A stretch of 64,000 nt of DNA from Histomonas meleagridis 2922-C6/04-290x. Lineage: Eukaryota > Protista > Parabasalia. Shown here in pieces: positions 7,134-53,285 of this stretch. The stretch's first letter is position 1; each line of letters opens with the position of its first letter. The position numbers were made by a program, and so were the translations under genes. The stretch lies in the NCBI GenBank assembly GCA_020184695.1, contig JAANOX010000238.1:434001-498000 (forward strand). The letters are read 5' to 3'. The notes beneath the pieces are model-generated. The model did not search any database, had not been told where the DNA came from, and saw only the letters and a list, made by a program, of their open reading frames with translations.

Positions 7134-7187
7134 TTAAAACATTATTTTATAAAACAAATCTGCTTTTTATAATTAACGGTCGTTGCA

Positions 7188-10119: not shown

Positions 10120-10274
10120 ATATTTCTTTTTGATGGATATTTGTCACTTTTATGTAATAAACTATTGTAAATTACAGTTAAAGCGGTTTTCATTCTAAAA
10201 GTTGTTAATTCTATAGTATCGTTCTTTTACATAACCGCCATAAACAAACTCATGCAAATTTTACTTACAATTAT

Positions 10275-19290: not shown

Positions 19291-19424
19291 TTTTCTTAAA
19301 CGCACTATGAAATTAAAGCTTCTCGATCAAAATCTTTTTTAAAACATTTTGTAACCTCAAAACAATGATTTTCTGGGTATGGGTATTGAAATTCGTTATA
19401 AAAAACGCATTTATTTCAGAGATT
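19291..19424 (+). repeat. About 130-bp dispersed repeat (also at 21572-21705 and 38616-38750; partial at about 35936-35975)
   Basis: The string TTTTCTTAAACGCACTATG(G/A)AATTAAAGCTTCT...GGGTATGGGTATTGAAATTCGTTATAAAAAACGCATT occurs three times. Confidence 0.9.
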
Positions 19425-19972
19425 ATGAAGAACTATCAAAGAATGATTGGGAACTTCATAAGAAATATAATGGTTTAAATAATTTCGGCTTAAATAATAA
19501 CTTTCCAATTAATCTTTGATTAATTTCTTCATCAATATTACTTGTGATATAAATTCGATCGAATATTAACGTCGATAAAAATGAATGAAATCGAAATATA
19601 TCAAATTATTTGTTTCGTTAACTTTTTCATCATGACAATGTGGTCGAAATGTCTAATAAAGAATTTGAAAGTGGTAAACACTGTTGCTGACATGGAACAA
19701 ATTCAAGTACCTACTTTGAATGCATCATAAAATTAGTGTGAAGCTCCATATATATAAAAATTTAAATAAAAAGATGGAGCATTATTTTTTGTGTATCAAG
19801 TTATCTTCATCTGCTTAATTTAGTGAAATTAATTCTTTTTGAAGAAATCTGTAATATCTTTTAAAGAATTCAAACAACAAGTGTTATCTCTTTAGCTTTG
19901 GATAAACAACAGAATTTCGATACGAGTTTTTGTTTACTTTATTCTAATTTAAAAAGTTGTTTCCTCCCCAAA

Positions 19973-20601
19973 ATGGGGGGGCAAACCAAAGCACAATTTA
20001 CTCTGTTCGATCTCGTAATGATGATGGACACGTTATAAGAGATAGGTGGGGGCGATTCAAGGGTTATATCACAGGATTAGCACCAATTGGTGAAACAAAT
20101 AACGATCCTAATACAATAAAGAAGGTCACTATCATAGGTTACGGCACAACAGGAAAAACAACCCTTTGTAAGTTTTTGAAAGGCGTTGATCATCATGGTG
20201 ATTATAATCCAACGAAAATAGCTGAAGCCTTTTTTTTAAATGACAAGAAAATATGCCTTTGGGATACGTCAGGAGATGAGCAATATTCAGCTCTTATCCC
20301 AATCTATACCCTTGGTTCGGATAAGCTTATTATGGTTTTTAGTCCTGATCAACCAAATTCTTTGAAAACTATTGATCCAGAAAGAGACTATCGGATTTAT
20401 AGTTGGCAATGCGAAATCATTATAGTGTATAATGAAAAAAGAGATAAATCTTATGAAAAATACTTTACATTAGATGATTTAAAAGCGAAATGCGAAACAT
20501 ATATGGGAGGAAAGTATCATTATAAAATATTTGAAGTTTCGTTGCTCGAAAATATAAACACTGAGTCACTAATTGAAGAAATTCTATATTTAGAATTCTA
20601 A
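19973..20601 (+). CDS. Divergent Ras-superfamily small GTPase, copy 1 (frameshifted in a G-run just after the probable ATG)
   Basis: P-loop GYGTTGKT, G3 WDTSG, G4-like YNEKRD and G5-like EVSLL. ATG followed by a 7-G run is out of frame here, whereas copy 2 has 5 G and gives MGAIQS. Confidence 0.75.
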
Positions 20602-20974
20602 ATATCAATTGATATTTATTTTATAATTTCCGGAAAGATCTTTTGTGGGTGTGTCGCGACAAGATCTATACATTATTGTACTCATGTTGAAATTAAATGA
20701 ATATGCTATAGTAAATAAATGCGATCTGATTTAAATGATAACCAAAAGTCTGATAAAACTTTTTGTAAAATAATTCACTCGAAACTGATCGTTTTTGATT
20801 ATGGGAAATGATATCATCATGATCCGTTTATTTTTTTGTAACCAAACGGTTGCCAAGCGAAATATTAATTTGAACTCAAAAAAATACCTTCACTATGAAA
20901 GGCCGAAATCCCGAATACCAGTGAAATTAAAATCACGAAGAATTTAGATGGCAATAAAAAACTCAAATATTTTT

Positions 20975-21320
20975 GTATCAAAAGAGGAATCGATATGAAT
21001 GAAAACTATATTTGTTTTAACATTATTGGGTTTAATATAAAAATATAAAATATATTCGATACATTTGAATCAGCACTTATATGGGCATCTTATGGTTGTG
21101 TTACAGATATAATTCAATTACTTCTTGAACAAGAAGGGATTGATATTAATGCTCAAGATATTTATTTGTTTTATTTTGTATTTTTTATAATAATTTGATA
21201 TTTCAAAATAATATTTGGAAATTATTTAAATTATTTTACACAGCACTTATTTTAGCATCTTGGAATGGTTATACAGAAATAGTTAAATTACTTCTTGAAC
21301 AAAAAGATATTTTATAAAAA
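20975..21320 (+). pseudogene. Ankyrin-repeat segment with 17-nt-quantised inserts (duplicated at about 38018-38360)
   Basis: SALIWASYGCVTDIIQLLLEQEGIDINAQDI | FGN | TALILASWNGYTEIVKLLLEQKD. Inserts lie at 21053-21069 (17 nt), 21163-21213 (51 nt) and 21223-21239 (17 nt). Confidence 0.8.
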
Positions 21321-22172
21321 ATAAAGAAATAAGAAAAAATTGGGGTATTATGCCATAAGTATAAATATGTTTGCATATGTTTTAATTTGAATAATGATTG
21401 AAAAGTTTCCTATCAAGTACAAATATTTTGTTAATCATATAGTTTTGTGTTAACAATTGCAATAATTGAATTATACATATCACAATTTTCATGAAAATAT
21501 AAAAATAATAATTGGAACTTTCGAATTTTGGATAATTGATTTTTTGATTTAAAGGGATCATAATTTGTTTGTTTTTCTTAAACGCACTATGGAATTAAAG
21601 CTTCTTGATCAAAATCTTTTTTAAAACATTTTGTAACCTCAAAACAATGATTTTCTGGGTATGGGTATTGAAATTCGTTATAAAAAACGCATTCATTTCA
21701 TAGATTATCTATGAAAAATTTCATTTTAATACAATTTAATGAAAATTTGGAATATCATTTTATGCGGATTATTTTCAAAAATAATTCATTATATCATTGA
21801 TATAATATATTAATCGAATTATTATATAATATTATTGAATAAAATATTTCATAATATGAACATAAACAAGAAAAAAAAAATTTAAAAAATTCAAATATGT
21901 ATTCAAATTGACCTGTTCACTTCACTTTCATTAGAAACGAACATTTTCCGGATATTTACTCTCAATACTGTTCCGTTTTAACTGAAATATTTCTATGATT
22001 ATTGGCGGTTCGCGTACTCAAATCCAGTTTTGAATGAATTCAACCACATCGACTCAAAATTTTCCATCAAAGTTGTTTGAGTTGGTTCAAAATTTGTTTT
22101 GCGAAACGTTTTGTTTAACAAATGAAAAAAACTATAAGAAATTAAAACAAATATGAATACATTTTATGCATG

Positions 22173-22759
22173 TTATTCTTCTGGTAAAGCTTTCTTCATT
22201 TCATCAAATGAATCAGAGTTATCTTCATTTTGATGACTTTCTACGTTTGTTCCATATTTATAGATAGCATCACCATAATCTTCATTTTGCCAGAGAATCG
22301 GAAGAGGTTCTGTCGAAATATTATTGGATGGTGTAAGGTCATTACTTTGTAAAAACAAAAACTGGTATGAATCTGAATCTGAATCTGAATACGATGAGTT
22401 TGTATCAAGTTTTTTGATTTCATTTCTTGGTCTCAATTTATCTGTTTGCATATCTAAAACTCGTGCAATTTCTCGTGAAATGGTTTGATCTTCTTTCTTA
22501 AATAAATCCTCAATATTCTGAATTTTACTGACAATTTTTACATTCAATGATATCACCATTTTTTTAATTCCTTGTTTAATTAAAGTTTCATCAGGATTTA
22601 AAACTATTCCATTAAAAAAATAAATAAACCTTTTCATTTTCAAAACAAGAAAAATTGTAATAAATCTGATAATCTTTCTGCTGTACATGATTTATGTATA
22701 AGGACAGGAATGATTGCACCAGGAAGCCATTGGATATTTATCTTTAATTCTCCTTCCAT
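22173..22759 (-). pseudogene. Ubiquitin-like-domain protein, copy 1 (homopolymer frameshifts in the 5' half)
   Basis: Same gene as 39217-39800. MEGELKINI start at 22759, UBL-like LFFNGIVLNPDETLIKQGIK, intact C-terminus ...MKKALPEE. Confidence 0.7.
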
Positions 22760-23119
22760 CTGGCTTTTGTGGGTAACGGTCTATTCTGGACAGATTCTAT
22801 CAAAAATAATCGTATCAATTGAACTTTGAGATGTACGGTTCTTTTCAAATATTCAATTCAAACAAAATCAATCTGACTCTGTCAAATTTGAACAAGTCAG
22901 ATAATCGTTTTGTTCGTATTTCCAACATCTTTATCTCCATAAATAAAAATTAAATGATAAAAAGTAATGCATAAAATGCATACATTTCTGGTATGTTTAT
23001 TAAATAACAAAAAATAATTATAATACAATTTGAATATGAATTTTTAAAAACAAATAATAATCAAAATAATTACTCTTATGATTGAATTTTATATTTTCCA
23101 CATACTCTTCTTTCTTTGT

Positions 23120-30241: not shown

Positions 30242-32437
30242 GACTCCGAATTATTATTAAAACAATTAATTTCCGCAAATTTTTTGGGTGACAAACTACT
30301 TCTTGGTACCATTCTATGTTTTCTTCTTTGGAACTGATTTTCTTCCAAATCCTTTAACAAGTTTTCTGGCACGTCGATTGACAAATGTTTTCTTTTTCTT
30401 ATATCCAATGCGTCTTTATTTGTTTTATCTTCCAATTGTTTAATTCCTACGCTTTCGAACAGTTTTAAGTCATCTACGTCATTATAATTATCATCATAAT
30501 CCAATTGTATATCTTCCAAAATATCTTCGTCGATTTCGTCGACGATATTTTGGTTCGGCGGAATAAAATATGAAGTATCGAATCTGTCCTTTAACTCTGG
30601 TATAAAAGGTAATTCGAGTTCTTCCATTTTATCCCAACGAATACTTTCGAACCATTTATGGCTCTTAATTTCGTCGATTGACTTTGATCCGATTCTTTTA
30701 TTCGGATCCAAACATAATAATTTATGTATTAGATCTTGAACTTCATCCGAAAACTCCGAAAGGTTTTCTTCGTTATAATGACCTTTTAAAGTCTTTTGGA
30801 ATATTTCCGTCGATGAATCGCCTGGAAATGGTGGCTCACCTACTAAGAACTCATATAAAATTGATCCTAATGACCAATAATCGGCAGTGAATGTATGCGA
30901 TTGCCCTAATATCATTTCAGGCGCTGCATAACCTGGAGTACCGACAAATGTATTATTAGTTGTAATCGATCGATCGACCATACCATAATATGATAACCCG
31001 AAGTCGATTAACTTTAAATGTCCTGTCGAGTCGATTAATATATTATTTGGTTTTAAGTCTCGATGAATTATTTTGTTCTCGCGGAGAAATTGTAACGCCA
31101 TTACAATTTGCGCAGTATAAATACGTGAAGTTTCTTCATCAAATGCAGAGACTAAATTTAATAATGAAAATAAATCGCCGCCTGGTAAATATTCCATTAC
31201 TAAATAAAAGTTATGCTCAGATATTATCGAATAGACTATGTGTTAGAATAAAAAACATACAGAATTTGGTCATGTATGGAGAATCAGTCTTCAAAAGAAT
31301 ATCTCGTTCAACTAATGTTCGTTGGACTTCATTCTTTTGTCTTAACAATGTTTTAGGGATAACTTTAATTGCATAGATGTCTTCAGTCGGGATTTTCTTG
31401 GATAAGAAAACGCGAGCAAATGCGCCGTATGATATCATCTTAAGAAATTGGAACTGTGATATCTTAGGCTGATTAATTTTTGGTAAATCTTTGGATAAAC
31501 TTGTCCGTCGTACAATGGATATCGCTCGTGAATAATTAAAAGCAGTGTTAAACTTTTCGCTTACAAGAGTGTTCGCTTTCTTAATGATGTCCGTGGCTTC
31601 TTGATTATTACGAACAGTGATAGGGATTAACGCTTCGGAGATTAAATCGATTTCTTCTGTAGCAAATTCGGACGATGTGTTGATTGAAATGGTTCGATCA
31701 ATTAATTCAAGGGTATGAAGAATGGGAAATATAACATTGACAGAATACATTTCATTGCCAGGCCACGGGCGGCGTTTGAGTATCGTTTGACGTGCATGAT
31801 CGGAAAGTTTTGATAATCGTTCATCTATTGATATCATTGTTTGTGACGATTCAAAGGCAAGTACACAATTCTTGGAATGAGTCTCAATTAATGAAAGTGG
31901 TACTTGCTTCTCACATATACGACAAACAATGTAATCTGAAGTTGATGAGGTATCTTGATCAATATTAATTTCTTTATCAAAGGAACTAGAGGTAGAAAAG
32001 TCAGGCCTGTCTTGTGAAATATCGTTGTTTTGATTTGGTAAGGTTAATTCATGATAATATGATAAATATGAAAAAATTTTGACAATGGCTAGAAGTGAAA
32101 AAAGCAAAAAATAACCTATCTTATCAAGTTGTGTAGTTTTGGTTTCAGCTAAACATAGTTTAAGAGATTGAATTGAATCATTGGAAACTTGTTTAAGACA
32201 TTCAAAGTCTGAATTTAATATATTTTTTATAACATCGTTAATAGTATTATATGCATCTTTGTCAGGCATGTCATCAGGTAAAGAATTAACTTGCTTTTGG
32301 ATTTCTTTGATAACTGTACGTTGTGCTCGAAGACCTAGATATTCACGAGGATAAAGATTCTCACTGTACCTAAAATTTTGCAGTGCAGGAGGAGTGATAG
32401 TGCCACTATTATGCGAGCTAATGCATTTCGGAATCAT
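30217..32437 (-). CDS. AGC-family Ser/Thr kinase (Greatwall/IRE/MAST-like) with an N-terminal zinc-finger-like motif; two exons, join 32437-31261 and 31235-30217
   Basis: CRICEKQ...ETHSKNC, then ISYGAFARV, YAIK, HRDLKPNN, DFG and GTPGYAAPE. Splicing gives TKF|FYSIISEHNFYLVMEYLPGGD. Confidence 0.9.
31236..31260 (-). other. 25-nt spliceosomal intron
   Basis: GTATGTTTTTTATTCTAACACATAG has a GT 5' end, a TCTAAC branch motif and an AG 3' end. Removal fuses the two kinase ORFs in frame. Confidence 0.92.
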
Positions 32438-34548: not shown

Positions 34549-35590
34549 ATGTCAAAAGAAAACATCGAAAAATTAAAATTCTTTCAACATCATAAAGAAC
34601 TTTTAAAGAATGATTTTGAACTTCATAAGCAATTAATTAAAGTAAGAGTAAATCAAAATGAAATTGCAAAAATAATTCGAAATGATGAAATCGAAAAACT
34701 TCAAGAAATATCATCACAATCACATTTTGATTTTGATCAAAGTATTAAACCATTTTTATGGAAGATGTTCATTTGTTAATGATTATGCTTCGTTGATTGA
34801 TTATGCAGCATTTTTTGGATCAGTTAAATGTTTTAAATATTTACTTGTGAATGGTGCATATGTTACATTCCCCAGAGATTATGCAATTGCAGGTGGAAAT
34901 GAAGAAATTATTCATTTATGTGAACAAAATCATTCGAAATTTGAAAAAATATATGAAATAGCAATTGAATTTCATCGGAATGATATCTTTAAATATTTTT
35001 ATGAAAATAAAATTAAAGAAATTAATAATTTAGAAGAGTTAGGAAAGCTTTGTATTGTTCATCATAACTATGAAATTTTTTCATTTTTACAAGAAGAAGG
35101 AATGAAAGTTACTGATGAAATTATAAATGAATCAATTGGAATTTTTATTATAAAGCTTGAATTTTATTAAGTATATTTCAAACTAAGCTTATGCTTGTAT
35201 TTACAAATTGTGATACAGAAACAGTTAAATTACTTCTTGAAGAAAAAGGATTTGATACCTAAAGATATTTATTTGTTTTATTTAAAATTTATTATAATAA
35301 TTTTTTGTTTCAAAATTATATTTGGAAATTATTTATATTATTTAGAACAGAACTTATAGAAGCATCTAGAAATGGTCATATAGAAATATTTAAATTACTT
35401 CTTGAACAAAAAGGAATTGACATTAATACTAAAGATATATATTTGTTTTATTCAAAATTTGTTATAATAATTTAATATATCAATATAATATTTGGATATT
35501 ATTTAAATTATTTAGAACTGCATATATGTATGCATCCTCAAGTGGCAAAACAGAAATAGTTAAATTACTTCTTGAACAAGAATAATAGAT
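34549..35590 (+). pseudogene. Ankyrin-family gene (5'-truncated or frameshifted) with 17-nt-quantised inserts
   Basis: FELHKQLIK...IIRNDEIEKLQEIS...LIDYAAFFGSVKCFKYLL matches the 50145 gene. Inserts lie at 35165-35181 (17 nt), 35270-35346 and 35440-35516 (each 51+9+17). There is a frameshift near 34760 and a 5-nt deletion near 35260. Confidence 0.8.
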
Positions 35591-36229: not shown

Positions 36230-36545
36230 AACAAAGAAGAAGAAAATAAAATAAGTGTCGTTAAACTAATTTCAATTTTTATCAAACGTATAACTAAAAT
36301 CAACACACAAGAATCATATTATTTAATCGAACAAATGATTGAACAAAATTTAATTAATAAAAATATCACTAAAAATATTAATTCAAAATATTTTTCTCAT
36401 TATAAAGCAAAAGAAGAAAACCAAAGCCAAAACCAAAACCACATGGCAACTATGGTCTAATGGAAATGATCCAATAGAAAGATACTTTAGGGATCATTAT
36501 GAAGAACTATCAAAGAATGATTGGGAACTTCATAAGAAATATAAT
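36230..36545 (+). pseudogene. Ankyrin-family N-terminal remnant leading into duplication copy 2
   Basis: TQESYYLIEQMIEQNLINKNITKNINSKYFSHY...RDHYEELSKNDWELHKKY. Confidence 0.7.
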
Positions 36546-37051
36546 GGTTTAAATAATTTCGGCTTAAATAATAACTTTCCAATTAATCTTTGATTAATTT
36601 CTTCATCAATATTACTTGTGATATAAATTCGATCGAATATTAACGTCGATAAAAATGAATGAAATCGAAATATATCAAATTATTTGTTTCGTTAACTTTT
36701 TTTCATCATGACAAATGTGGTCGAAATGTCTAATAAAGAATTTGAAAGTGGTAAACACTGTTTGCTGACATGGAACAAATTCAAGTACCTACTTTGAATG
36801 CATCATAAAATTAGTGTGAAGCTCCCATATATAAAAATTTAAAATAAAAAGATGGAGCATTATTTTTTTGTGTATCAAGTTATCTTCATCTGCTTAATTT
36901 AGTGAAATTAATTCTTTTTGAAGAAATCTGTAATATCTTTTAAAGAATTCAAACAACAAGTGTTATCTCTTTAGCTTTGGATAAACAACAGAATTTCGAT
37001 ACGAGTTTTTGTTTACTTTATTCTAATTTAAAAAGTTGTTTCCTCCCCAAA

Positions 37052-37735
37052 ATGGGGGCAATCCAAAGCACAATTTACTCTGTTCGATCTCGTAATGATG
37101 ATGGACACGTTATAAGAGATAGGTGGGGGCGATTCAAGGGTTATATCACAGGATTAGCACCAATTGGTGAAACAAATAACGATCCTAATACAATAAAGAA
37201 GGTCACTATCATAGGTTACGGCACAACAGGAAAAACAACAACCCTCTGTAAGTTTTTGAAAGGCGTTTATCATCATGGTGATTATCATCCAACGAAAATA
37301 GCTGAAGCCTAAAATGACAAGAAAATATGCCTTTGGGATACGTCAGGAGATGAGCAATATTCAGCTCTTATCCCAATCTATACCCTTGGTTCGGATAAGC
37401 TTATTATGGTTTTTAGTCCTGATCAACCAAATTCTTTGAAAACTATTGATCCAGAAAGAGACTATCGGATTTATAGTTGGCAATGCGAAATCATTATAGT
37501 GTATAATGAAAAAAGAGATAAATCTTATGAAAAATACTTTACATTAGATGATTTAAAAGCGAAATGCGAAACATATATGGGAGGAAAGTATCATTATAAA
37601 ATATTTGAAGTTTCGTTGCTCGAAAATATAAACACTGAGTCACTAATTGAAGAAATTCTATATTTAGATAATTTCCGGAAAGATCTTTTGTGGGTGTGTC
37701 GCGACAAGATCTATACATTATTGTACTCATGTTGA
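37052..37735 (+). pseudogene. Divergent small GTPase, copy 2 (intact MGAIQS start, internal in-frame TAA, altered C-terminus)
   Basis: GCC TAA AAT GAC replaces GCC TTT TTT TTA AAT GAC. There is an extra ACA codon after the P-loop, and a deletion of about 29 nt removes the copy-1 stop. Confidence 0.75.
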
Positions 37736-39216
37736 AATTAAATGAATATGCTATAGTAAATAAATGCGATCTGATTTAAATGATAACCAAAAGTCTGATA
37801 AAACTTTTTGTAAAATAATTCACTCGAAACTGATCGTTTTTGATTATGGGAAATGATATCATCATGATCCGTTTATTTTTGTAACCAAACGGTTGCCAAG
37901 CGAAATATTAATTTGAACTCAAAAAAATGCCTTCACTTTGTATGGCCGAAATCCCGAATACCAGTGAAATTAAAATCACGAAGAATTTAGATGGCAATAA
38001 AAAACTCAAAGATTTTTGTATCAAAAGAGGAATCGATATGAATGAAAACTATATTTGTTTTAACATTATTGGGTTTAATATAAAAATATAAAATATATTC
38101 GATACATTTGAATCAGCACTTATATGGGCATCTTATGGTTGTGTTACAGATATAATTCAATTACTTCTTGAACAAGAAGGGATTGATATTAATGCTCAAG
38201 ATATTTATTTGTTTTATTTTGTATTTTTTATAATAATTTGATATTTCAAAATAATATTTGGAAATTATTTAAATTATTTTACACAGCACTTATTTTAGCA
38301 TCTTGGAATGGTTATACAGAAATAGTTAAATTACTTCTTGAACAAAAAGATATTTTATAAAAAATAAAGAAATAAGAAAAAATTGGGGTATTATGCCATA
38401 AGTATAAATATGTTTGCATATGTTTTAATTTGAATAATGATTGAAAAGTTTCCTATCAAGTACAAATATTTTTGTTAATCATATAGTTTTCTGTTAACAA
38501 TTGCAATAATTGAATTATACATATCACAATTTTCATGAAAATATAAAAATAATAATTGGAACTTTCGAATTTTGGATAATTGATTTTTTGATTTAAAGGG
38601 ATCATAATTTGTTTGTTTTTCTTAAACGCACTATGGAATTAAAGCTTCTTGATCAAAATCTTTTTTAAAACATTTTGTAACCTCAAAACAATGATTTTCT
38701 GGGTATGGGTATTGAAATTCGTTATAAAAAACGCATTTATTTCATAGATTATCTATGAAAAATTTCATTTTAATACAATTTAATGAAAATTTGGAATATC
38801 ATTTTATGCGGATTATTTTCAAAAATAATTCATTATATCATTGATATAATATATTAATCGAATTATTATATAATATTATTGAATAAAATATTTCATAATA
38901 TGAACATAAACAAGAATAAAGTTATTTAAAAAATTCAAATATGTATTCAAATTGACCTGTTCACTTCACTTTCATTAGAAACGAACATTTTCCGGATATT
39001 TACTCTCAATACTGTTCCGTTTTAACTGAAATATTTCTATGATTATTGGCGGTTCGCGTACTCAAATCCAGTTTTGAATGAATTCAACCACATCGACTCA
39101 AAATTTTCCATCAAAGTTGTTTGAGTTGGTTCAAAATTTGTTTTTGCGAAACGTTTTGTTTAACAAATGAAAAACTATAAGAAATTAAAACAAATATGAA
39201 TACATTTTTATGCATG

Positions 39217-39800
39217 TTATTCTTCTGGTAAAGCTTTCTTCATTTCATCAAATGAATCAGAGTTATCTTCATTTTGATGACTTTCTACGTTTGTTCCATA
39301 TTTATAGATAGCATCACCATAATCTTCATTTTGCCAGAGAATCGGAAGAGGTTCTGTCGAAATATTATTGGATGGTGTAAGGTCATTACTTTGTAAAAAA
39401 ACAAAAACTGGTATGAATCTGAATCTGAATCTGAATACGATGAGTTTGTATCAAGTTTTTTGATTTCATTTCTTGGTCTCAATTTATCTGTTTGCATATC
39501 TAAAACTCGTGCAATTTCTCGTGAAATGGTTTGATCTTCTTTCTTAAATAAATCCTCAATATTCTGAATTTTACTGACAATTTTACATTCAATGATATCA
39601 CCATTTTTAATTCCTTGTTTAATTAAAGTTTCATCAGGATTTAAAACTATTCCATTAAAAAATAAATAAACCTTTTCATTTTCAAAACAAGAAAATTGTA
39701 ATAAATCTGATAATCTTTCTGCTGTACATGATTTATGTATAAGGACAGGAATGATTGCACCAGGAAGCCATTGGATATTTATCTTTAATTCTCCTTCCAT
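39217..39800 (-). pseudogene. Ubiquitin-like-domain protein, copy 2 (intact N-terminus, frameshift in an A/T run near 39395)
   Basis: MEGELKINIQWLPGAIIPVLI...VYLFFNGIVLNPDETLIKQGIKNGDIIEC is a UBL-fold pattern. Confidence 0.7.
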
Positions 39801-40687
39801 CTGGCTTTTGTGGGTAACGGTCTATTCTGGACAGATTCTATCAAAAATAATCGTATCAATTGAACTTTGAGATGTACGGTTCTTTTCAAATATTCAATTC
39901 AAACAAAATCAATCTGACTCTGTCAAATTTGAAAGGACCCGTTTGCAAACAAGACTTAAAACTTTTTTCCAATATTATTGTAAATATTATTCAAAAACAT
40001 GATTTAGATATCTAAATTCACATAATTTATAAGGGAATTAAATTAATTTTTTTTCGAAAACAAAAAATTGTTACAGGAACTAAGATCAAAGTTTTGCAAA
40101 ACTCATGATGAAATGACTGATCCCATATAAAATGAGTTGAGTAATATCTATTATTTCACCCATTTTATAAAAATTCTTTAATTCTCTAGGAGAATGTTTT
40201 AAAATCAGTGATCAATTGATCAAACCTATCAAATTTATATTTTATTAAAAAAAAAAAGTATAAAAATTTCTATTTTGCAATCCGATCAATGCTAAATTTA
40301 TCAATTAATTAGTTAATTAAAATTTTTAAAAAACAATTAAATTAAAAAATAATTTGCAAAGACGTCATCATCATGTTTCAATTTAAAAAATTCTAAGTAT
40401 TCTTTCTAACCTTATAATATGAAAATAATACTATAATATTTACTATATTTTCCATTAATTAATTTCTAATGCATAATATAATAAATTGTTGAAAACATAT
40501 AATAACTTTTAAAAATTTAAAGATTTTCAAATAATTTCCTCTAATACTGCTTGATTTAATGTTGAAGATAGTTTTTTATTCTTTTTCCATTTTCTATATT
40601 AATTGAGCACTTTGCATTTTTTATAAACTAATCAATTTTGATTGAAATTTACGGTTTTATTAAGCAAAAAAGTTTTATTTTGGCGCC

Positions 40688-41531: not shown

Positions 41532-41604
41532 GCTTCTGTAGCCCAGTGGTTAGAGCGTTCGCCTAGTAAGCGGAAGATCGCGAGTTCGACTCTCGCCAGA
41601 AGCA
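41532..41604 (+). tRNA. tRNA-Thr(AGT): tRNA-Thr, anticodon AGT
   Basis: Acceptor stem GCTTCTG/CAGAAGC, D-loop AGTGGTTA, anticodon stem TTCGC/GCGGA with loop CT-AGT-AA, T-arm GCGAG-TTCGACT-CTCGC, 73 nt, followed by a T-run (Pol III terminator). Confidence 0.97.
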
Positions 41605-42417: not shown

Positions 42418-45400
42418 TCACCACCACGGGCACCATCCCGGGTACATCAAGGCCAAATTTTCGTAATCCGTTGCCTCTTTAATTAGTTTATCCACTTGTA
42501 CCTTCACAGGAATTTTCTCACTTCCTTTATCCTTCCCTTCCAATTTCGCTTTCATACTCTCAATGACCTCAACTGACAAATTCTGTTTCGAGCTATTATT
42601 CTCAATCCATTGTAACAATGGATCATAAATGAAAGTCTCAAGCAAACCCATAATTTGTTCTCTGTTATGCCTCAACAATTTCATTATATTCTCACAGCAA
42701 CATCGAAATGTTCCTTCGATTTTAGTTGCTTCTAATGCATTAATTAACATCTTCGTTAATCGAAATGGAACTCTCTCAGGATATTTATCACGATGTCGTG
42801 CTACTTCAAAGCATGCACTAAAGTCAGTGTGTACTAATTTTGCCATTTTCCCTTTGATCATTATATTCTCTAAATGGCGATCTCCTAAACCAATTACATA
42901 TCCGACCATAGATGACATTGACAACGATGTCGTGTACATAGTTCGGCGTTGAAGCCATCGCGCGGAATCATTAGAGTTAAGAAAGATAATTTGAGACAAG
43001 TCATCTATCGGTGAGTTTTCGATTGAGTATTTAAACGCTTCAATTTTTTCGGCCTGTGTCAGCACATCAAATTTTTGATAATTAAATTTCTTTCTTGAAA
43101 TATTAATTTCGTAATTTAAATCGATTTTCTTCTTAATACGATAATCATGAATAGAGTCATATAATGTAGTACAGTTAGGTACCCATCCTAATAATCCTAT
43201 TTCACGTGTAATTGGTATAGCTTTATATGTAACTAATTGTAAATGTGATTTTAATATTAATGAACTCTGTTTAACTAGACCATTAACAAATGAAAATAAT
43301 TGCATTACACGTTCATCCAAACGCGTATCCTCATGAGATTTTAATAAATAAAAATATTTTTTACCATCCGATCCGACCATTGAAATTTGTCTCGACTTTT
43401 GTTTGCTCTTCACAATTTTGAATATGTTGTCAATTGATTGAATGGAGACTATCGGCTTATCGTATGAAAAAGTTCCCGGTATATTCAATTCGGCGTCAGA
43501 AAAATTGTGAAGAACCGGCGAGGCGTCCGTTAAAGAAATGAATTTAATTGAACTTATAATTGTTTTAATTTTATTCTGGATATTTAATAAAATATTCCAA
43601 GCTTCGATCATATAAGTTTCCTCATGTTTATTTTGATATTTTAACAAATTTTCTTTTACATTATTTATTTTTGATCCGAAATAATTAATAAACGCAATTT
43701 CATTAAAAGTTTCCGGCGATTTATTTGTAATCAAATTAATTAAAGGCAAAATTAACGAAAGAATTTCATTATAATTCTTATTTAAGTAATATTTTGAAGC
43801 TTCATTAATTTTATTCATCCAAATTTCCCACCAAGAAGCGCCGATTCGAATTATTTCATCTGTAAATTTATTAAATTTATTTATTAATGAATTAAATTTT
43901 GGTTTTAACTTTTCGACAATTTCCAATGCGTAAAACGAAGAACTCTTTAATAATATTGCCAATGAGTATAATATACATTGAGGATATTCCGAACCGATTT
44001 GTATCAACAAATTTTGTACAATTTTCTTTATCTTCGAATTATCAGCGCTCAAACGAGCGACGATTTGAGGTAACACAGGAATCCATAAATGATTTGGGAT
44101 TTTCAACAATTTCTTTTCGAATATTTCATAAATTTTTTGGTTATCACTTCGAAACAATATCGACAAAGTTTGTAATATGAAATTAAGTGGATTTTCAGTC
44201 GATTGGATTAATCCATTTATTGAAGCCTTAAAAGATTTATATAAATAAATATCATTTTTATAATCGTTCGATAGAATTAAGTTAATTTTCGCCCATGAAC
44301 GTAATACGCTTAAATCATTTGGCGTTTCTTTAATAACATCTTCAAGATATTTATACGATTCATTTAATTTGCCTTTAATTAATAACCATTTCCCAACTAA
44401 TAATTTCATTTCATGATATATTTTATTATCTTCATTCGAATTATTTTCGATTAAATTAATAATCGAATCAATCGCTTTAAAATGATTATCTTTATACCAT
44501 TCGATTTGTGCCTTATAATAATCTAATTCAACTTTATTAAATGAATTACATACATATAATACTAATTCTACAATTTCGATTTTCTTCTCTGTTAATGCAA
44601 TGTTTATTAATTTGACCCAATAATTATGTAATTTATTCGATGGAAAACATATCGATCGAATACATAAAAGTTGATATATATATAATGAATCTTCATGTAA
44701 TTGATTAAACCTTAAATTCCATAATTCTTCATTATTTAATAACTTTTGTTCTAATTCTTTACTTTCGAAATAATCCGCATTTTTTAATGAGTTTTGGATT
44801 TGTTTTATTTCAATAATGGATTCAATATCATATAATAAAGAGCCTTTTAAATAATCAGGAAATAAACGCTCTAAGTCATCACTAACTATCGGAAACAAAT
44901 GTTCATAACAATGACTTTTAAATTTATTTAAAATAGGTTCAATAGAATATATTTCATTATTAATAATTTTCTTAATTATTATTAAGAATAATGAATTAGG
45001 ATCTTCTTCATTTAATAAATCATTCGAATGTTTATTAAAGTTATTAATATCTAAAAGATTCCAATATATCGAAATATCGAAATATTTCTTTTCATTATCA
45101 TTAACAAATTTACAATTTTTATATAAATTATATAATTCATGAATACATTTCGTAATAATTTCTTTGTGTTCATTAAACTTTTCTCCATATTTCTCAAATG
45201 ATTCATCCCATATTCCTAATGATTCATTCATAAACGGAGTAATTTGTACATTAAACTTTTCGATATAATTTAAGACACCAGAAGAAGCTAAAGTTAATCC
45301 AAGTTGTTGATTAATTAAAAATAAGTTTTCGATACTTAAAGGATCACCTTTAATAAACATTTTTTCGGCTGCACGTAAAGCTAAAGGTACTAAATCGACC

Positions 45401-48400
45401 ATTAAAGCCTTTTGCATTAATGTTTTATTATCTATCGGTGGAGTTAATTGTAAGAAATCAATTATTTCGAAAAATGTTAAAAATGTTCGAGTAACAAAAC
45501 GTGGAACATTTTGTACACGGAAAACTTTATCGATAATTTTTTCTAATGTTTCTTTACCTTCAAATACAGAAGATAATAAAAAATGAAATGCAATTGATAT
45601 CGGAACTATTGCATCTTTAATTGCGGAATATCTTTCTGCTAAAGCAGAACATAAAGAAATAGCTCTTGAAGGACATTGTCTTAACATTGTCGATGAAAAT
45701 TCATCATACCATGAAATCCATTGATTTTCATCATAATTTTCATTAGGTACTGTTGGCTGTAAATAAGTTACACTTTGTTTCGCTGGTTTAATATTCATCT
45801 TAGCAGGCATTTTACCTGATGGTATTGGATTACATAATAATTGTACTGATTCAGTAATCGGCAAATCATTTTCTAATGAATTAATCACTGAATATAATGC
45901 AGTGTTTTCTAATAAGTTAAAAACATTTTTAATTTGTGGAATATATAATAAAAATTGTTTTCCTAAATTATATGCTACAATTGTTAATATATTTTCTGTT
46001 AAATCATTTAAATTAGGATTTATGCTTCGAATTTGTAACATTGCACGAATGATTTGTGAATAATATTTATTAGTACCACCAAATGCGAAAATTGTTTGAA
46101 TTTGTGTTAACGCTTCAATACAATTATTTGTTTGATCAGCATTTAATATTAACCAAGAGATTAATGATGGATATACAATATAATCAACTTGTTGAATATA
46201 TTTTTCAAATGATTGTAATGTAGTAAACACTGCTAACGCTACATTCGCAGGATAATATTCTAAACCTGATACAAACAATGTAACAAGTTTTAATAAATAA
46301 GGTTCAAAAGATGAAGGTAAAAAACTCATTATTAAACGTGAAGCTCGAAGTAATAATATTTGATCCATATTATTCCATTGTTCACATATTACATGCACAG
46401 TAGTTTCGATTAAAGGTTTAAATGAATCTCTAAGACAAACTAATAAAGTAGAAATATGTGTTAATATTAATGTTGTAGAAGAAGATTTTGATTTTAATAA
46501 TAAATCAATTCGTGAGATTAATGTATCTTCAAATGAACTAATTTGAGGAAAAGATTTTAATATATTAAATAATGTATCAATAGCCATTGATTGTAATGTA
46601 TTAAATGAATCATCTGATAATATATATAATAAATGTGATATACATACACCAAATGATGCAAATATTAATGATTCATATGGATCATTATTTTCACATTGTG
46701 AAATAAAGACTCCGACTTTAGGTAATATTAAATTATTTTCTGATTTATGTGAATTTTTTATTATATTTTGCATTTTTATTTGTTTTATTGGGCCTATTAT
46801 TGATAATGCTCTAATTAAATAATCATAAGATACTTCAATTGGATGTAATTTAGTTAATAATAATAATTTATATAATATAAATGAATGTTCTTCATAAATT
46901 GTTTTAGATAATTTTGTCATTTTTAACGCAGTTATTAATAAAATAATTCCATAATTTAATTGTGATTTAGATGAATGTGATGAAAATATATTATTTAAAT
47001 GATTAACTAATAATTGTAAATCAACTTCTTTAGATGAAATTCGTATTAAATATGATAATAATTCTAACATCGATGGTATTAATGAACTATTTTCTTTTAA
47101 TATTCGTTGTGTTAAAAAAGTCGAATATTTAGATAATAATGAATAAGCTATAGATGAATTAGAATTAGATGAAAATGCTGCTCTTCCAACTATTAGAAAA
47201 CATAATAAATTTTCTTTCGTAATTTTCGTTGTTTGTCGAATCGATTGTACTTTTTCATACATGAAATTATTTAATAAATCTTTAACAATTGGAAAATGTA
47301 TCATCGAAATTAAATATTTAAATGATTTTGATCGAATTTTAGAATCGAAATCATGTAACAAAGATTGTAATGAAGGAATTACTGATATATTTGGTCCTAA
47401 AGATTGTAAAAATGTTAATATATCAATTCGTAATTGTTGATCTTTTTCTAAATCAATATTCGAGAATAATATTTGGATTATTTCTTGTGATGGATATTTT
47501 TCATGATAATTCTTTAAAAACATTATTAAACTTCGACGTACTTCTAATGAATTATGATATATTAATTTAGAATATTGTAATACTAATGATAATGATAAAT
47601 AATTATTTGTGATTTGTAACTTATTTAATGTTTGAAATGATAATTCTATTTGCGTTGGTTGTGATTCTGGATTCATTAATATTCGATGTACCATTTGCAT
47701 TACATTTGATTGTATAAAATCATATAAATCTTTTTGATTCTCTTGAATATAATAAAAAGCTTCTGGTAATAATGCTGATAATTGTCTAGTAAAAACAATT
47801 TTAGATTCTTCTTTAAATGATTTAATGTCTGTGGATAATAACGCTAAATATGCATAAATAGATTGATCACTTTCTAATGATTCTGAAACACTTTCTTTAC
47901 ATTTCGCAATAACGTTCTCCTCTTGTGTATATGCATAAGGCCGATTAAATATATATTTACCGAATGCTACTAATGCTTCATTACGAATCGGTGATTTCTT
48001 CCGTAATAAAGGTATCATTTTGGTGAAAAAAGACATGTTGACATGAGTGGTAAAAAGTGACGGAGTGGTTTTCAATTGAAATGGAATTAACGATAGAGCA
48101 GAAATTCGTTTTTGATTGTCACTTGAATCTAAAACATTTAAATCAACACTACTAAAACAAAAGCGATCTATAAGTTCGGGATATTTGTTAAGAATGATCT
48201 CACAGCCCATAACAACTCCTTCAAATGTTTCAGTGGTTTGATTTGAAAATTGTAACATGAATCGTTTAATTAATGTGTTGGGTGAAAATAATATGGTGTC
48301 GATTTTGGTGTCAAGTAAATCTACAAGTGATAATAAAGCTAATTGTCGTATCTCTGAATTACTAGAATGAAGATAAAAACTAATGATTTGTTGAACTTTG

Positions 48401-48957
48401 GGCATAATAGCTTCAAAACAAAAAGGAAATTTCTTAAGAAGTAAATTCAATAAGTAAAAAGCTGTTTTAATGGAATAAATATTTGAATGTGAACTTAATT
48501 GCCATATTTTATCTCTGATAGGTTGAAGAATTATGTGTATAGAGGAACTAAATGTACGATAAAGATAACTTAATAAAGAACCTAATAATTGAAATAAATC
48601 GATATCTGGTTCTGGTTCAAATAAACCTACACGTGTTAAAATCCTTTGTTGAAGTACAATCGAATTTCCAAAATCAACATCAATTAAAGCATTTAAAACA
48701 ATAAATTCTTCTTTTTGACTTAACATTGAAGCTGTTTTAAAAACAGTGTTCAGTACTTTCTTGTCTTCATTAGACTTGATTTCTGTTGCATATATTGAAG
48801 CAATATAATTTTGAAAATTATTTACAGCAATCTGAAATAAATCATTTTTTTTATCGTAATATGCATTAATAATGCTATCAATATATGTGGAGAGTGTATT
48901 TTTATCTGCTTCATTTGGCAAATCATTTGTAAAATAGATTTGCTTATTTCTCTCCAT
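42418..48957 (-). CDS. TOR: TOR-family PIKK kinase, 2179 aa
   Basis: HEAT repeats, FAT (WIPVLPQIVARL), FRB (WWEIWMNKINEASKYY), kinase motifs (KSHEDTRLDERVMQLF, GLGDRHLEN, PERVPFRLT) and FATC (ENLALMYPGWCPWW). Confidence 0.97.
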   Translation of the reverse strand: MERNKQIYFTNDLPNEADKNTLSTYIDSIINAYYDKKNDLFQIAVNNFQNYIASIYATEIKSNEDKKVLNTVFKTASMLSQKEEFIVLNALIDVDFGNSIVLQQRILTRVGLFEPEPDIDLFQLLGSLLSYLYRTFSSSIHIILQPIRDKIWQLSSHSNIYSIKTAFYLLNLLLKKFPFCFEAIMPKVQQIISFYLHSSNSEIRQLALLSLVDLLDTKIDTILFSPNTLIKRFMLQFSNQTTETFEGVVMGCEIILNKYPELIDRFCFSSVDLNVLDSSDNQKRISALSLIPFQLKTTPSLFTTHVNMSFFTKMIPLLRKKSPIRNEALVAFGKYIFNRPYAYTQEENVIAKCKESVSESLESDQSIYAYLALLSTDIKSFKEESKIVFTRQLSALLPEAFYYIQENQKDLYDFIQSNVMQMVHRILMNPESQPTQIELSFQTLNKLQITNNYLSLSLVLQYSKLIYHNSLEVRRSLIMFLKNYHEKYPSQEIIQILFSNIDLEKDQQLRIDILTFLQSLGPNISVIPSLQSLLHDFDSKIRSKSFKYLISMIHFPIVKDLLNNFMYEKVQSIRQTTKITKENLLCFLIVGRAAFSSNSNSSIAYSLLSKYSTFLTQRILKENSSLIPSMLELLSYLIRISSKEVDLQLLVNHLNNIFSSHSSKSQLNYGIILLITALKMTKLSKTIYEEHSFILYKLLLLTKLHPIEVSYDYLIRALSIIGPIKQIKMQNIIKNSHKSENNLILPKVGVFISQCENNDPYESLIFASFGVCISHLLYILSDDSFNTLQSMAIDTLFNILKSFPQISSFEDTLISRIDLLLKSKSSSTTLILTHISTLLVCLRDSFKPLIETTVHVICEQWNNMDQILLLRASRLIMSFLPSSFEPYLLKLVTLFVSGLEYYPANVALAVFTTLQSFEKYIQQVDYIVYPSLISWLILNADQTNNCIEALTQIQTIFAFGGTNKYYSQIIRAMLQIRSINPNLNDLTENILTIVAYNLGKQFLLYIPQIKNVFNLLENTALYSVINSLENDLPITESVQLLCNPIPSGKMPAKMNIKPAKQSVTYLQPTVPNENYDENQWISWYDEFSSTMLRQCPSRAISLCSALAERYSAIKDAIVPISIAFHFLLSSVFEGKETLEKIIDKVFRVQNVPRFVTRTFLTFFEIIDFLQLTPPIDNKTLMQKALMVDLVPLALRAAEKMFIKGDPLSIENLFLINQQLGLTLASSGVLNYIEKFNVQITPFMNESLGIWDESFEKYGEKFNEHKEIITKCIHELYNLYKNCKFVNDNEKKYFDISIYWNLLDINNFNKHSNDLLNEEDPNSLFLIIIKKIINNEIYSIEPILNKFKSHCYEHLFPIVSDDLERLFPDYLKGSLLYDIESIIEIKQIQNSLKNADYFESKELEQKLLNNEELWNLRFNQLHEDSLYIYQLLCIRSICFPSNKLHNYWVKLINIALTEKKIEIVELVLYVCNSFNKVELDYYKAQIEWYKDNHFKAIDSIINLIENNSNEDNKIYHEMKLLVGKWLLIKGKLNESYKYLEDVIKETPNDLSVLRSWAKINLILSNDYKNDIYLYKSFKASINGLIQSTENPLNFILQTLSILFRSDNQKIYEIFEKKLLKIPNHLWIPVLPQIVARLSADNSKIKKIVQNLLIQIGSEYPQCILYSLAILLKSSSFYALEIVEKLKPKFNSLINKFNKFTDEIIRIGASWWEIWMNKINEASKYYLNKNYNEILSLILPLINLITNKSPETFNEIAFINYFGSKINNVKENLLKYQNKHEETYMIEAWNILLNIQNKIKTIISSIKFISLTDASPVLHNFSDAELNIPGTFSYDKPIVSIQSIDNIFKIVKSKQKSRQISMVGSDGKKYFYLLKSHEDTRLDERVMQLFSFVNGLVKQSSLILKSHLQLVTYKAIPITREIGLLGWVPNCTTLYDSIHDYRIKKKIDLNYEINISRKKFNYQKFDVLTQAEKIEAFKYSIENSPIDDLSQIIFLNSNDSARWLQRRTMYTTSLSMSSMVGYVIGLGDRHLENIMIKGKMAKLVHTDFSACFEVARHRDKYPERVPFRLTKMLINALEATKIEGTFRCCCENIMKLLRHNREQIMGLLETFIYDPLLQWIENNSSKQNLSVEVIESMKAKLEGKDKGSEKIPVKVQVDKLIKEATDYENLALMYPGWCPWW

Positions 48958-49943: not shown

Positions 49944-50144
49944 AATTGATTATTACGTGTATTTTTGATTATATAATCAAATAGCAATCAAAAATCATCT
50001 TTTCTAAGAGTGTCATGATGATATTGTATATAACATTTCTTTATAATTCTACTGAATCAGCAACATAAGTGATCGCTTTTGAGTTTTGAACTTGACATCC
50101 TATCGTCACTCAGAAAAAAAGATTCTCCATTAACGAACAATACT

Positions 50145-52805
50145 ATGGATTTACTCCGTACATTAGAAAATCTAATACGAAATCTCAATAAAGAAAATAT
50201 TGAATTATCAGTTGTAAATACTATGAATTTATATGATGCAAATTATCCATATTCATTTCAATATATAATTTGTTCGATGATTTTTTCAACATTTTTTTCA
50301 CAAAATAATGAATTTGATAAATTTTTAAGTTACTTGAAAGCACTACAAACGAAGGAAACAGAAATAAAATCTAAAATCATTGATATTTTCACTCAATATT
50401 TAACAAATAAATATAAACAAGAATCATTTTACTTATTAGAAAAGATGATTGAGGAAAAATTAATTGATTCAAGTGTTACTCAAAATGTGAAATCAAGTTA
50501 TTTTGAACATTATAGAACAACCAGAAGGAAAAGAAATGAATATAATCCTTGTCCATTTTCAGACAAGTTTAAAGCCAATTTAAAGGATCTTAAGAAGGGC
50601 AATTGGAAACTTCATAAGCAGTTAATTAAACAAGGGATTAATCCTAATGAAATATCAAAAATAATTCGAAATGATGAAATCGAAAAACTTCAAGAAATAT
50701 CATCACAAAATGATTTTAATTTTAATCAAATCATTGAGCCATCACTTTATGAAAGATGCTCATTTATAAATAAGGAAAATGTTACATTAATTGATTATGC
50801 AGCATTTTTTGGATCAATAAAATGTTTTAAATATTTACTCATAAATAAAGCAAATGTAAATAACGCAGGTAAATATGCTATTGCAGGTGGAAATAGAGAG
50901 ATAGTTCATTTATGTGAACAAAATCATTCATCTTTCAATGGTGCATCTCAAACAGCAATTAAATTCCATCAAAATGATCTATTTCATTATCTTTATGATA
51001 ACAAATTAGAAAAATTTAGCGATCAATTAATTTTGAAATATCAAAATAAGCTTAAAATTTTAGTTCGTGATGATATTATACATATATTTTTAGAAGTGGC
51101 TTGTATAAGATATAATAATTATGAAATTCTTTCATTCTTACAAAATGAATATTCTAATGTACATGAAAGTGTTATTCGTGTTGCTATTAAATATGGAAAC
51201 TTTTTCCTTGTTAAATATTTTTATGATAATAATCATTTCCCTAAAACTTTTACTTCTGATTTTTTGAAATCGAAAAATAATGAACTTATAAATTATATTA
51301 TCAATTATAAAGGAATTGATTATGATTTTGATCCAGTTATTTTGTTTTATTATATGTTTGTTTTGATAATTTGATATTTCATAAAATAATTTGTGGTTTT
51401 TTCTTGTAGTTTAAGAATGTTTTTTTGCATGCTAATGACAATAAACAATTTGATGTTATTAAATACCTTTTTGAAAACAAAAAGATAAATATTAATGCAA
51501 ATATTTAATCTAATTATTTTTTATTTTAATATAATATTTGGATATTATTTGTTTTATTTATAACACCAGCAATTGTATATGCAACAAAGTGTAATAATAT
51601 AGAAATAGTTCAATTACTTGTTAAATATGATTATCTTGATATCAATGCTCGAGGTATTTATTTAATATATTTCCTATTTTTATATATGTTTTGATGTTTT
51701 AAATGTAATATTTAGAGATTATTCATAATGCATAAAACTTCATTTATAATAGCATCTGAAGAAGGTTATACGGAAATAGTTAAAATACTTCTTGAATACA
51801 GAACAATAAATGTTAATCTACATGATGTTTGTTTGTTATATTATCGGATTATTTCAACAAATTCGTGTTTCTAAATTTAATGTATGAATTGTTATAAATA
51901 TTTCATACAGCACTTATGTATGCTTGTGAATTTGGTCATACTAAAATAGTTGAATTACTTTTACAACAAAAAGGAATTGATATTAATGAAGTTGAAAATT
52001 ATTTGTTATATTTAATGTTTCTTTTTATAATTTCGAATTCACATAAAATTATTCAAAATTATTGTAATTATTTCGAACAGCACTTATGTATGCAGCTGAA
52101 AACGGTCATGCTGAAATAGTTAAATTGCTTCTACAACAAAAAGGAATTAATGTTAATGCTGAAGCTATTTATTGAATATATTATGGGTTTATTTCAGGAA
52201 TTTTATGTTTTAAAATTATGTTTGGAAATTATTAATATTATTTCAAACAGCACTTACTTTTTCACTTAATAATTTCAATAATGAAACAACCAAAATACTT
52301 CTGGAATATGAAGGAACTGATATTAATAATGTGTTTACTATATAAACACTTTTTTTAAAGTTACTTCGATAAATTTGGAAATTATATAAAATATTTCAAA
52401 CATTATTGATGTATGCATCAAATATAGGTTCGATTCGACTAGTTCAACTCCTTGTCGATCAAAAACGAATTGATATTAATGCTAAAGATATTTATTTGTT
52501 TTATTTAATATTTGTTTTAATAATTTAATATTATAAAATAATATTTGGAAATTATTGAAAATATTTAATACAGCACTTATGATTGCATGCGACAAAAATC
52601 ATTTAGAAATAGTTAAAATACTTCTTGAACAAGAAGGAATTGATATTAATGCTAAAGATATTTATTTGTTTTATTTAATATTTGTTTTAATAATTTAATA
52701 TTATAAAATAATATTTGGAAATGATTAAAAATATTTAATACAGCACTTATGTTGGCATCGCAAAATGGTCGCACAGAAATAGTTAAATTATTTGGACAAA
52801 AATAA
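50145..52805 (+). CDS. Ankyrin-repeat family protein, about 693 aa if 18 non-canonical inserts are removed
   Basis: Open exon 50145-51338 (LIDYAAFFGSIKCFKYLL...), then nine ankyrin-repeat segments, mostly 93 nt and stop-free, separated by blocks of (34-52 nt insert)+(9 nt)+(17 nt insert). Confidence 0.75.
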
Positions 52806-53285
52806 ATTAAGGGAGATACACTCATTACTGTAAGAGTTTTTCTAAAAAATTTTATATAAGAAAACATCGACATTGATTAAAAAAATTTTATTGTTTTAAT
52901 GTCATTTTTTTAACTTACTGCTCATTGGTCTTTTTTATATATTTGTAAAATAAATTAAATCATAGAAATGTAACTTAAAAAGTACCCAAGACATTTTTTG
53001 AGATCAACATCATTCATTGGATTAAATTATAATTGATATACATGAAATATAACAAAAATTAAAATATTATAAATATCAAAGTACAAATTAGTGGCTGAGT
53101 GATGTATGTTTTATTTGGAACCCTCATGAGTAGAAACAATATATTCTTGTTATCTAAAAATAAAAGCGCTTTTCGATTTAAAGTTCGATCTATCCCGTCG
53201 TTTCTTTTTTGATATGTAAAGTTCTAAATTGGTGAATAGGAATAATTATGCTATAGTTTTATTTAAAAACATATTTGTAAAATTT

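Follow-up and report, generated by a model that had tools for sequence, protein, structure and literature searches.

Ultra-short introns are, as far as is known, GT-AG introns that lie between exons of normal size. The shortest spliceosomal introns measure 16–17 nucleotides (nt) in Mikrocytos mackini, 15–16 nt in Stentor coeruleus and 18–21 nt in the nucleomorph of Bigelowiella natans, and the literature describes them as spliceosomal and strongly conserved in sequence (PMC10245619). The type A/B introns of Trichomonas follow the pattern GTAYGT...ACTAACACAYAG, the shortest having 23 nt (PMC12316389), and the genome annotation of the poultry parasite Histomonas meleagridis contains 573–638 predicted introns, with no gene having more than one (PMC8529796). 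Micro-exons of 3 nt have been described in Drosophila and vertebrates (PMC8042270, PMC6314551), and of 1 nt in Fusarium (PMC12940212). In the present work, a 64,000-nt stretch of H. meleagridis 2922-C6/04-290x (assembly GCA_020184695.1, contig JAANOX010000238.1, positions 434,001 to 498,000 of the forward strand; hereafter the window, in whose own coordinates positions are given) was analyzed, and in particular the ankyrin gene at 50145–52805 on the plus strand, whose repeat junctions carry 34 short AT-rich units that alternate with single codons and, with one exception, are absent from the RNA contigs covering them.

These units resemble ultra-short introns in their removal from RNA, in their very narrow size class at the lower length limit and in their AT/T-richness, but differ from them in having A/G...T ends, a motif of ~8 bits and a tandem arrangement with 3-nt exons. 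With canonical parabasalid introns they share the lineage, a T-rich interior and, in a minority of units, a GTATGT or GTATAT start; however, they lack CTAAC and AG, they measure 17 nt instead of at least 23 nt, and there are 34 of them in one gene. The single-codon exons are joined into mRNA as known micro-exons are, but the latter occur singly between long canonical introns, whereas here up to 7–9 follow one another at a 20-nt pitch. A first base A or G is shared with U12-type (AT-AC) introns, although the RTATCCTT 5' motif and the TCCTTAAC branch site are missing and the 3' end is T, not AC or AG. The non-conventional introns of euglenids, whose borders are likewise not GT-AG, vary in length and show pairing between their ends; the units, in contrast, are fixed in length and pairing was unsupported when five clusters were folded. 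No description of such an architecture was found in the literature on parabasalid or Histomonas introns, 17-nt introns and 3-nt exons, and a layout of 17-nt units between single codons is considered not to have been described before.

Removal of the units from RNA

The share of the 31-mers of the locus that was present in sequencing runs was 0.92–0.93 for the DNA runs and 0.55–0.61 for the four RNA runs, the latter values being near the 0.652 computed for a fully processed RNA. The depth in the RNA runs was zero in both intergenic flanks (outside ~50097–52812), whereas that of the DNA run was not zero there. Furthermore, DNA contigs (X1 records 4 and 5) were unbroken across 50950–51781 and 51753–52491, many inserts included. 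The 1159-nt RNA contig X5 record 18, on the other hand, aligned with 0 mismatches as the separate pieces 50906–51335, 51537–51655, 51904–51999, 52074–52166, 52244–52340 and 52397–52490, with 99, 111, 6, 9 and 5 contig letters between successive pieces. The same piece structure was repeated in contigs of X4 and X6, so that it was found in three RNA runs with 0 mismatches.

Junction by junction, the RNA contigs lacked 102, 137, 68, 68 and 51 nt, and these losses equal the insert sums of the initial annotation, which had been made from the sequence alone (51+17+34, 52+17+51+17, 51+17, 51+17 and 34+17). Its proposal that the inserts are old and are removed during expression was supported: they have diverged between repeats and paralogues, and the RNA contigs skip them, 51543–51559 excepted, while the DNA contigs contain them. 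Genomic DNA free of inserts, which it had suggested as a possibility, was not encountered, since the DNA contigs keep the inserts and about 12 of the 15 listed RNA-run joints (skips from 78 nt up) had a depth of 0 in the DNA run, whose counts are not exhaustive. The units are removed at the RNA level and the DNA retains them. In the broad sense of the term, as sequences that the genomic DNA contains and the transcript lacks, they are introns.

Arrangement of 17-nt units and single codons

The gene extends from the ATG at 50145 to the TAA at 52803–52805, as initially annotated, and encodes an N-terminal DUF3447-type domain followed by nine ankyrin repeats, a pairing typical of parabasalids. Membership of the ankyrin family was judged by Pfam matches to DUF3447 and Ank, repeats of 33–34 residues and the D-x-x-G-x-T-A-L hairpin, all of which were found. 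The open reading frame (ORF) from the ATG matched DUF3447 and several Ank models above the Pfam cut-off, and the decoded repeats showed the hairpin and helix motifs, with loops such as D-N-N-G-N-T-A-L and A-W-Y-G-Q-T-A-L in which the Gly occupies the canonical ankyrin position. When all 34 units were taken out, a single ORF of 693 codons resulted, ending at the TAA. Its long first exon (50145–51335, 397 codons) is uninterrupted in RNA, with contigs contiguous over 50165–50675 and 50906–51335, and a unit-like 17-mer at 50255, inside this exon, stays in the RNA.

Nine consecutive repeat junctions with AT-rich inserts in 17-nt pieces had been recognized initially and were found again, but not in the layout then proposed, in which 18 inserts were arranged as an A insert (51 or 34 nt), a 9-nt micro-exon and a 17-nt B insert. 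Three explicit layout models were simulated, and the pieces expected from an exact-extension aligner were compared with the RNA pieces. The initial layout missed 9 of the 10 informative piece ends, and a hybrid, in which a single long A insert and an unbroken micro-exon were combined with a B insert moved by 3 nt, missed five ends and most letter counts. Every observed piece end and every between-piece letter count was reproduced by the 17+3 model, in which a 20-nt module consists of one 17-nt unit and then one codon; stepping back 17+3 nt from each RNA-defined exon start reached the upstream exon end at every junction. The gene therefore has 34 units, all of 17 nt except one of 18 nt (51696–51713), in nine clusters of 3 or 4, and tandem 17-nt units alternating with 3-nt exons take the place of the 9-nt micro-exon and the 51-nt insert. 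The B inserts had been placed 3 nt too far to the right, as CAT, CGA, CAA and CAA are kept in RNA at 51904, 52074, 52244 and 52397; relative to the exons first annotated, the RNA pieces start 3 nt earlier and, at three junctions, also end 3 nt earlier. Among the placements of k 17-nt blocks, those fitting the RNA numbered 105 of 17,550 at junction 5, 44 of 17,550 at junction 6 and 12 of 1,771 at junction 7 (0.25–0.7%), and no fitting placement at junctions 6 and 7 contained a contiguous 51- or 34-nt insert.

All the clusters lie on the plus strand, and the listed RNA contigs cover clusters 1–7, clusters 8 and 9 being outside. Cluster 1 (51336–51412) consists of the units 51336–51352, 51356–51372, 51376–51392 and 51396–51412 with the codons TAT, GAT and GTG; it follows the RNA piece end at 51335, which sets its 5' end as GT, and the 99 letters before 51537 are made up of 9+90. 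In cluster 2 (51503–51539), the units 51503–51519 and 51523–51539 are separated by the codon TTT and followed by GGA, the RNA piece starting at 51537 as predicted. Cluster 3 (51656–51733) contains the units 51656–51672, 51676–51692, 51696–51713 (18 nt) and 51717–51733 with the codons CCT, GAT and AGA; the RNA piece end at 51655 sets its 5' end as AT, and the 111 letters between the pieces correspond to 9+93+9. Clusters 4, 5 and 6 each have four 17-nt units. The codons of cluster 4 (51827–51903) are TCG, CGT and ATG, and its 3' T is fixed by the RNA piece start at 51904, with CAT kept. Cluster 5 (51997–52073; AAT, CGA, CAA) has RNA ends at 51999 and 52074 with 6 letters between them, as predicted. 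Cluster 6 (52167–52243; TGG, TAT, GGA) has RNA ends at 52166 and 52244 with 9 letters between them, which is incompatible with a contiguous 51-nt insert. Cluster 7 (52340–52396) has three 17-nt units and the codons AAA and GGA; with RNA ends at 52340 and 52397 and 5 letters between them, just three RNA products fit, the predicted one among them. By homology with clusters 4–7 and with paralogues, cluster 8 (52490–52566) is predicted to comprise four 17-nt units with the codons AAT, AAT and GGA, giving the loop D-N-N-G-N-T-A-L, and cluster 9 (52660–52736), its near copy in a 170-nt tandem repeat with 94% matches, would be parsed alike. The 17-nt units alternate with single codons and are confined to the loop (beta-hairpin) between consecutive repeats.

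The exception mentioned above is a unit-like 17-mer at 51543–51559 (+) that starts with T (TATTATTTG...). It sits at the place of the last unit of cluster 2, and the two units directly upstream are removed in RNA; nevertheless, the contigs X5 record 18 and X6 record 22 cover 51537–51655 without a break, so the B insert initially placed at 51546–51562 is not removed in these contigs. Keeping 51543–51559 introduces an in-frame stop at codon 439, and downstream of it the processed frame continues for 255 stop-free codons in AT-rich sequence. Either a minor isoform removes this unit, or the gene copy was disabled very recently. The case hints that a T as the first base appears to block removal.

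The layout was also reflected in an ungapped alignment of eight four-unit clusters, five from this gene and three paralogous ones at 21160, 35267 and 35437. Across the eight copies, the codon columns had an identity of 0.43 and a guanine-cytosine (GC) content of 35%, compared with 0.77 and 7% for the units, and they showed the lowest identity and the highest GC among all 20 possible phases. Exon third positions were 68% identical across the eight copies and the units 77%, so conservation of the units is no lower than that of the coding sequence. It is the single codons that show the greatest variation, as expected for the hypervariable tips of ankyrin hairpins.

Ends of the units and mechanism of removal

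Three 5' ends were fixed by RNA free of sliding ambiguity, GT at 51336 and AT at 51656 and 52167. The 3' ends fixed by RNA (51903, 52073, 52243 and 52396) all read ...TTT with a terminal T. About half of the units begin with A, most end in TTT, and all 33 removed units start with A or G. In agreement with the initial annotation, no junction register gave GT...AG. The units do not fit the U2 type, their 5' ends not being uniformly GT and their RNA-fixed 3' ends lacking AG, nor do they fit the U12 AT-AC type, given a 5' consensus R-T-T-T and a 3' end TTT. The branch motif CTAAC occurs in no unit, and the only candidate for a branch site, an A at position 14, is shared by 75% of them. The whole consensus, R-T-T-T, nine loose A/T positions and A-T-T-T, amounts to ~7.9 bits. 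With 33 of the 34 units at 17 nt and one at 18 nt, the units have the narrow length of ultra-short introns (15–21 nt), but not their conserved sequence with GT...AG ends. The motif TATT-N5-TATTT-N3-ACAGCA had 10 matches where 0.05 were expected. Flanking microhomology was scarce: 11 of 33 units allowed zero sliding and most others at most 1 nt, so that pointer repeats are absent and nothing supports template switching as a source of artefacts. Folding of five clusters gave z-scores of -0.4, +0.5, +2.0, -1.6 and -2.0 and no shared structure, although weak A-U helices could escape detection.

The units are RNA-removed, non-GT-AG, phase-0, tandem 17-nt intervening sequences that probably represent degenerate ultra-short spliceosomal introns. 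The spliceosome was inferred because 17 nt falls within the 15–21 nt class, because some units have a canonical 5' site and because an A is conserved 4 nt from the 3' end. Upon loss of the units, the single codons are joined, a four-module cluster giving three loop residues (for example D|N|N|G|N-T-A-L). Recognition would depend on the weak 5' R-T-T-T, on the A at position 14 as a possible branch site and, above all, on the fixed length of ~17 nt, and a first base T would prevent removal of a unit. Within the reading that removal occurs at the RNA level, the chance that it is a relaxed, length-reliant spliceosomal reaction is judged somewhat better than even. The arrays would expand or contract as 20-nt modules are duplicated in tandem or lost, each event amounting to exactly one codon in the mRNA, and the ankyrin binding loops would thereby vary in length and sequence.

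Several points weigh against this interpretation. The units lack AG and CTAAC and have a 3' terminal T, a combination that to our knowledge is unprecedented for a spliceosome, and 3-nt exons between 17-nt introns are too small for any exon or intron definition known to us. Each strand of the 64 kb contains ~100 equally good 17-mers, unremoved ones such as that at 50255 among them; with a motif of ~7.9 bits, sequence alone cannot therefore specify excision. The dominant RNA of the 50145 gene keeps one unit and hence a premature stop, and this copy may be decaying. As regards the data, the runs X4–X7 carry the guessed label 'RNA?', and contigs lose rare variants, so that unspliced, alternative or rare DNA forms could be hidden. 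Additionally, the RNA contigs are known by their coordinates, the retained codons being deduced from piece ends, letter counts, frame and conservation. Searches of protein collections with the N-terminal domain and a shorter piece recovered no RNA contig letters, and the junction letters are consequently deduced as well.

Among the four mechanisms suggested initially, non-canonical splicing of mini-introns gave the best fit, whereas ribosomal bypassing fails because the RNA lacks the inserts. DNA excision is unsupported at contig level, long DNA contigs passing unbranched through at least five inserts, and splicing of the IRE1 or tRNA type gained no support from the folding. A possible though doubtful reading departs from the spliceosome altogether: a previously unknown length-measuring RNA excision-ligation system would process the binding loops in the expanded ankyrin family one codon at a time, and may diversify the loops by including or skipping single-codon exons. 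Its concrete form, an endonuclease and an RNA ligase that cut and rejoin with a 17-nt ruler, possibly directed by a protein or a guide RNA, as a new system on the ankyrin family, was considered unlikely. Such a reaction would suit units without GT-AG or a branch motif, with a 5' A or G and a 3' terminal T, whose motif carries too little information for splice-site recognition, and it would avoid the 3-nt exons with which spliceosome assembly is hard to square. It would also suit the confinement of the units in the window to ankyrin loci, the ORF-rescue scan described below having given just three weak matches outside them. However, no shared RNA structure of the bulge-helix-bulge or IRE1 type was present among the five folded clusters, some units start with the canonical GTATGT, 17 nt falls exactly in the minimal spliceosomal intron class, and neither an enzyme nor a guide RNA emerged as a candidate.

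Compared with such a reaction and with degenerate spliceosomal introns, programmed excision from DNA in a subpopulation of templates, of which the processed copies alone would be transcribed, is very improbable. Rare DNA forms can escape contigs, and the fixed length and AT-richness of the units resemble the internal eliminated sequences of ciliates, which are also short AT-rich coding inserts of quantised lengths. Those sequences, though, are cut from DNA and bounded by TA/pointers, whereas the units stay in the DNA and have no pointers: the DNA contigs cross many units without branching or loss of depth, the majority of the listed joints from RNA runs have a depth of 0 in the DNA run, and flanking microhomology is missing or at most 1 nt in most units. 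Moreover, molecules that are processed elsewhere keep one unit, a pattern typical of RNA processing, and the fact that we know of no nuclear dimorphism in parabasalids also counts against excision from DNA. The stretch was likewise considered as ciliate germline DNA, in which TAA and TAG would encode glutamine, and this was rejected on account of 397 codons without an in-frame TAA or TAG, the DUF3447 domain and a canonical intron of parabasalid type.

It is also highly unlikely that the units belong to a decaying, amplified dead repeat family and that their processing is an artefact of reverse-transcription template switching, assembly errors or transcripts of insert-free paralogues. The premature stop in the RNA of the 50145 gene, the frameshifted paralogue at 34550–35590 and the highly repetitive nature of the family, many paralogue contigs of which align at this gene, would be in line with it. 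Against it, three runs gave the same pieces, which match ~930 nt of a diverged family with 0 mismatches; the units are removed precisely, so that the reading frame is restored; the microhomology for template switching is absent; and after the retained unit the AT-rich sequence stays free of stops for 255 codons. Codon columns and units behave differently, and an insert-free DNA copy would interrupt the long DNA contigs. Finally, translational bypass was rejected: the bypass elements of T4 gene 60 and the byps of Magnusiomyces mitochondria are also short AT-rich inserts in an intact frame, but they remain in the mRNA, whereas the RNA contigs themselves lack the units.

Paralogues, homologous loci and the rest of the window

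A paralogous DUF3447-ankyrin locus at 34550–35590 (+) contains four-unit clusters at 35267–35343 and 35437–35513. A frameshift and an in-frame stop around 34755–34780 make it look like a pseudogene. Its unit 35497–35513 begins with T, as does the retained 51543–51559. Another four-unit cluster lies in an ankyrin gene fragment at 21160–21236 (+), with a second copy at 38203–38279; both are included in a 3.5-kb segmental duplication of 97.8% identity (19422–22892 and 36496–39933). Within the window, the unit chains sit in ankyrin loci, apart from a few chains of two or three motif matches elsewhere. One of these, a three-module chain with gat, gat and aat codons at 8979–9035 (+), between two ORFs, may be an ankyrin relic, and the other short chains are likely due to chance. 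A scan for single units whose removal rescues an ORF gave three weak matches outside the known ankyrin loci (7828, 16766 and 61148), which are probably chance matches.

A full HMMER search with the N-terminal domain found 2855 homologues at E≤0.001, and several of the closest ones end exactly where the ankyrin array begins. Modules were also present at the homologue loci L003, L004, L006, L007 and L008 of the H. meleagridis assembly GCA_020186115.1 and at L009 of GCA_020184695.1, presumably from the attenuated strain. At L003, matches to the unit motif paired 18 times at an offset of 20 nt and at most once at any other offset, and some loops held 7–9 modules. The ankyrin gene at 536–1650 of this locus has inter-repeat loops longer than canonical, with up to 7–9 consecutive single-codon exons. 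Adjacent 20-nt modules are near-identical there, codon included, which is evidence for duplication of the 20-nt module. A minority of units start with the 5' splice site of canonical parabasalid introns (GTATGT or GTATAT). Furthermore, two gene calls of L003 (5001–6521 and 7097–8614, of 506 and 505 residues) became one ORF after removal of sixteen 17-nt units, and the fused product of 5001–8614 comprises, besides a DUF3447 domain, four ankyrin repeats and a long, repetitive Ser/Thr-rich tail.

Standard splice-aware mappers and gene finders overlook such units, so many members of the parasite's large ankyrin family will have been annotated as truncated or split genes, as the two L003 calls illustrate, and the same probably holds for its relatives. 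If confirmed with raw reads, this would be the most extreme exon-intron architecture known to us: dozens of non-GT-AG intervening sequences of 17 nt per gene, with single-codon exons at a 20-nt pitch, in contrast with the published annotation, in which no gene has more than one intron. The question arises how cut sites are chosen with a signal of ~8 bits and a 3-nt exon, and the system would offer a natural setting for studying recognition by a length ruler where splicing reaches its physical lower limit. The 20-nt module also suggests an evolutionary device, in which one module gained or lost would correspond to one residue in a protein-binding loop.

Related proteins were encoded on the metagenome contigs L001, L002 and L010 (ENA ERZ16268242, ERZ25039387 and ERZ25039391), with exact matches confined to those contigs. 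Modules of 17+3 nt occur at L001 1853–1929 and L002 1925–1981; the L002 cluster stays open by chance and was read through by the gene caller, and L010 terminates in a read-through of unit-like sequence. The system may extend to another strain or species. A scan of JGI metagenomes for relatives gave 509 pattern matches, none of which was confirmed.

The window as a whole is AT-rich (22–36% GC) and densely filled with ORFs that are mostly intron-less. It encodes a calreticulin, for which an exact match was found on contig WSYJ01000025.1 of GCA_020186115.1, and, at 42418–48957 on the minus strand, an intron-less TOR-like kinase of 2179 residues with FRB, PI3/PI4-kinase and FATC domains. A tRNA gene at 41532–41604 (+) was the sole match in a Rfam scan of the window. 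The normal GT-AG intron that the initial annotation had reported at 31236 was recovered as a 25-nt intron at 31236–31260 on the minus strand (GTATGT...CTAACACATAG). This intron, by which a protein kinase gene is interrupted, served as a comparator; it is the only canonical parabasalid-type intron confirmed within the window. A further candidate is a 74-nt sequence at 10195–10268 (-), GTAAGT...TTAACAACTTTTAG, which fits a loose canonical-intron pattern.

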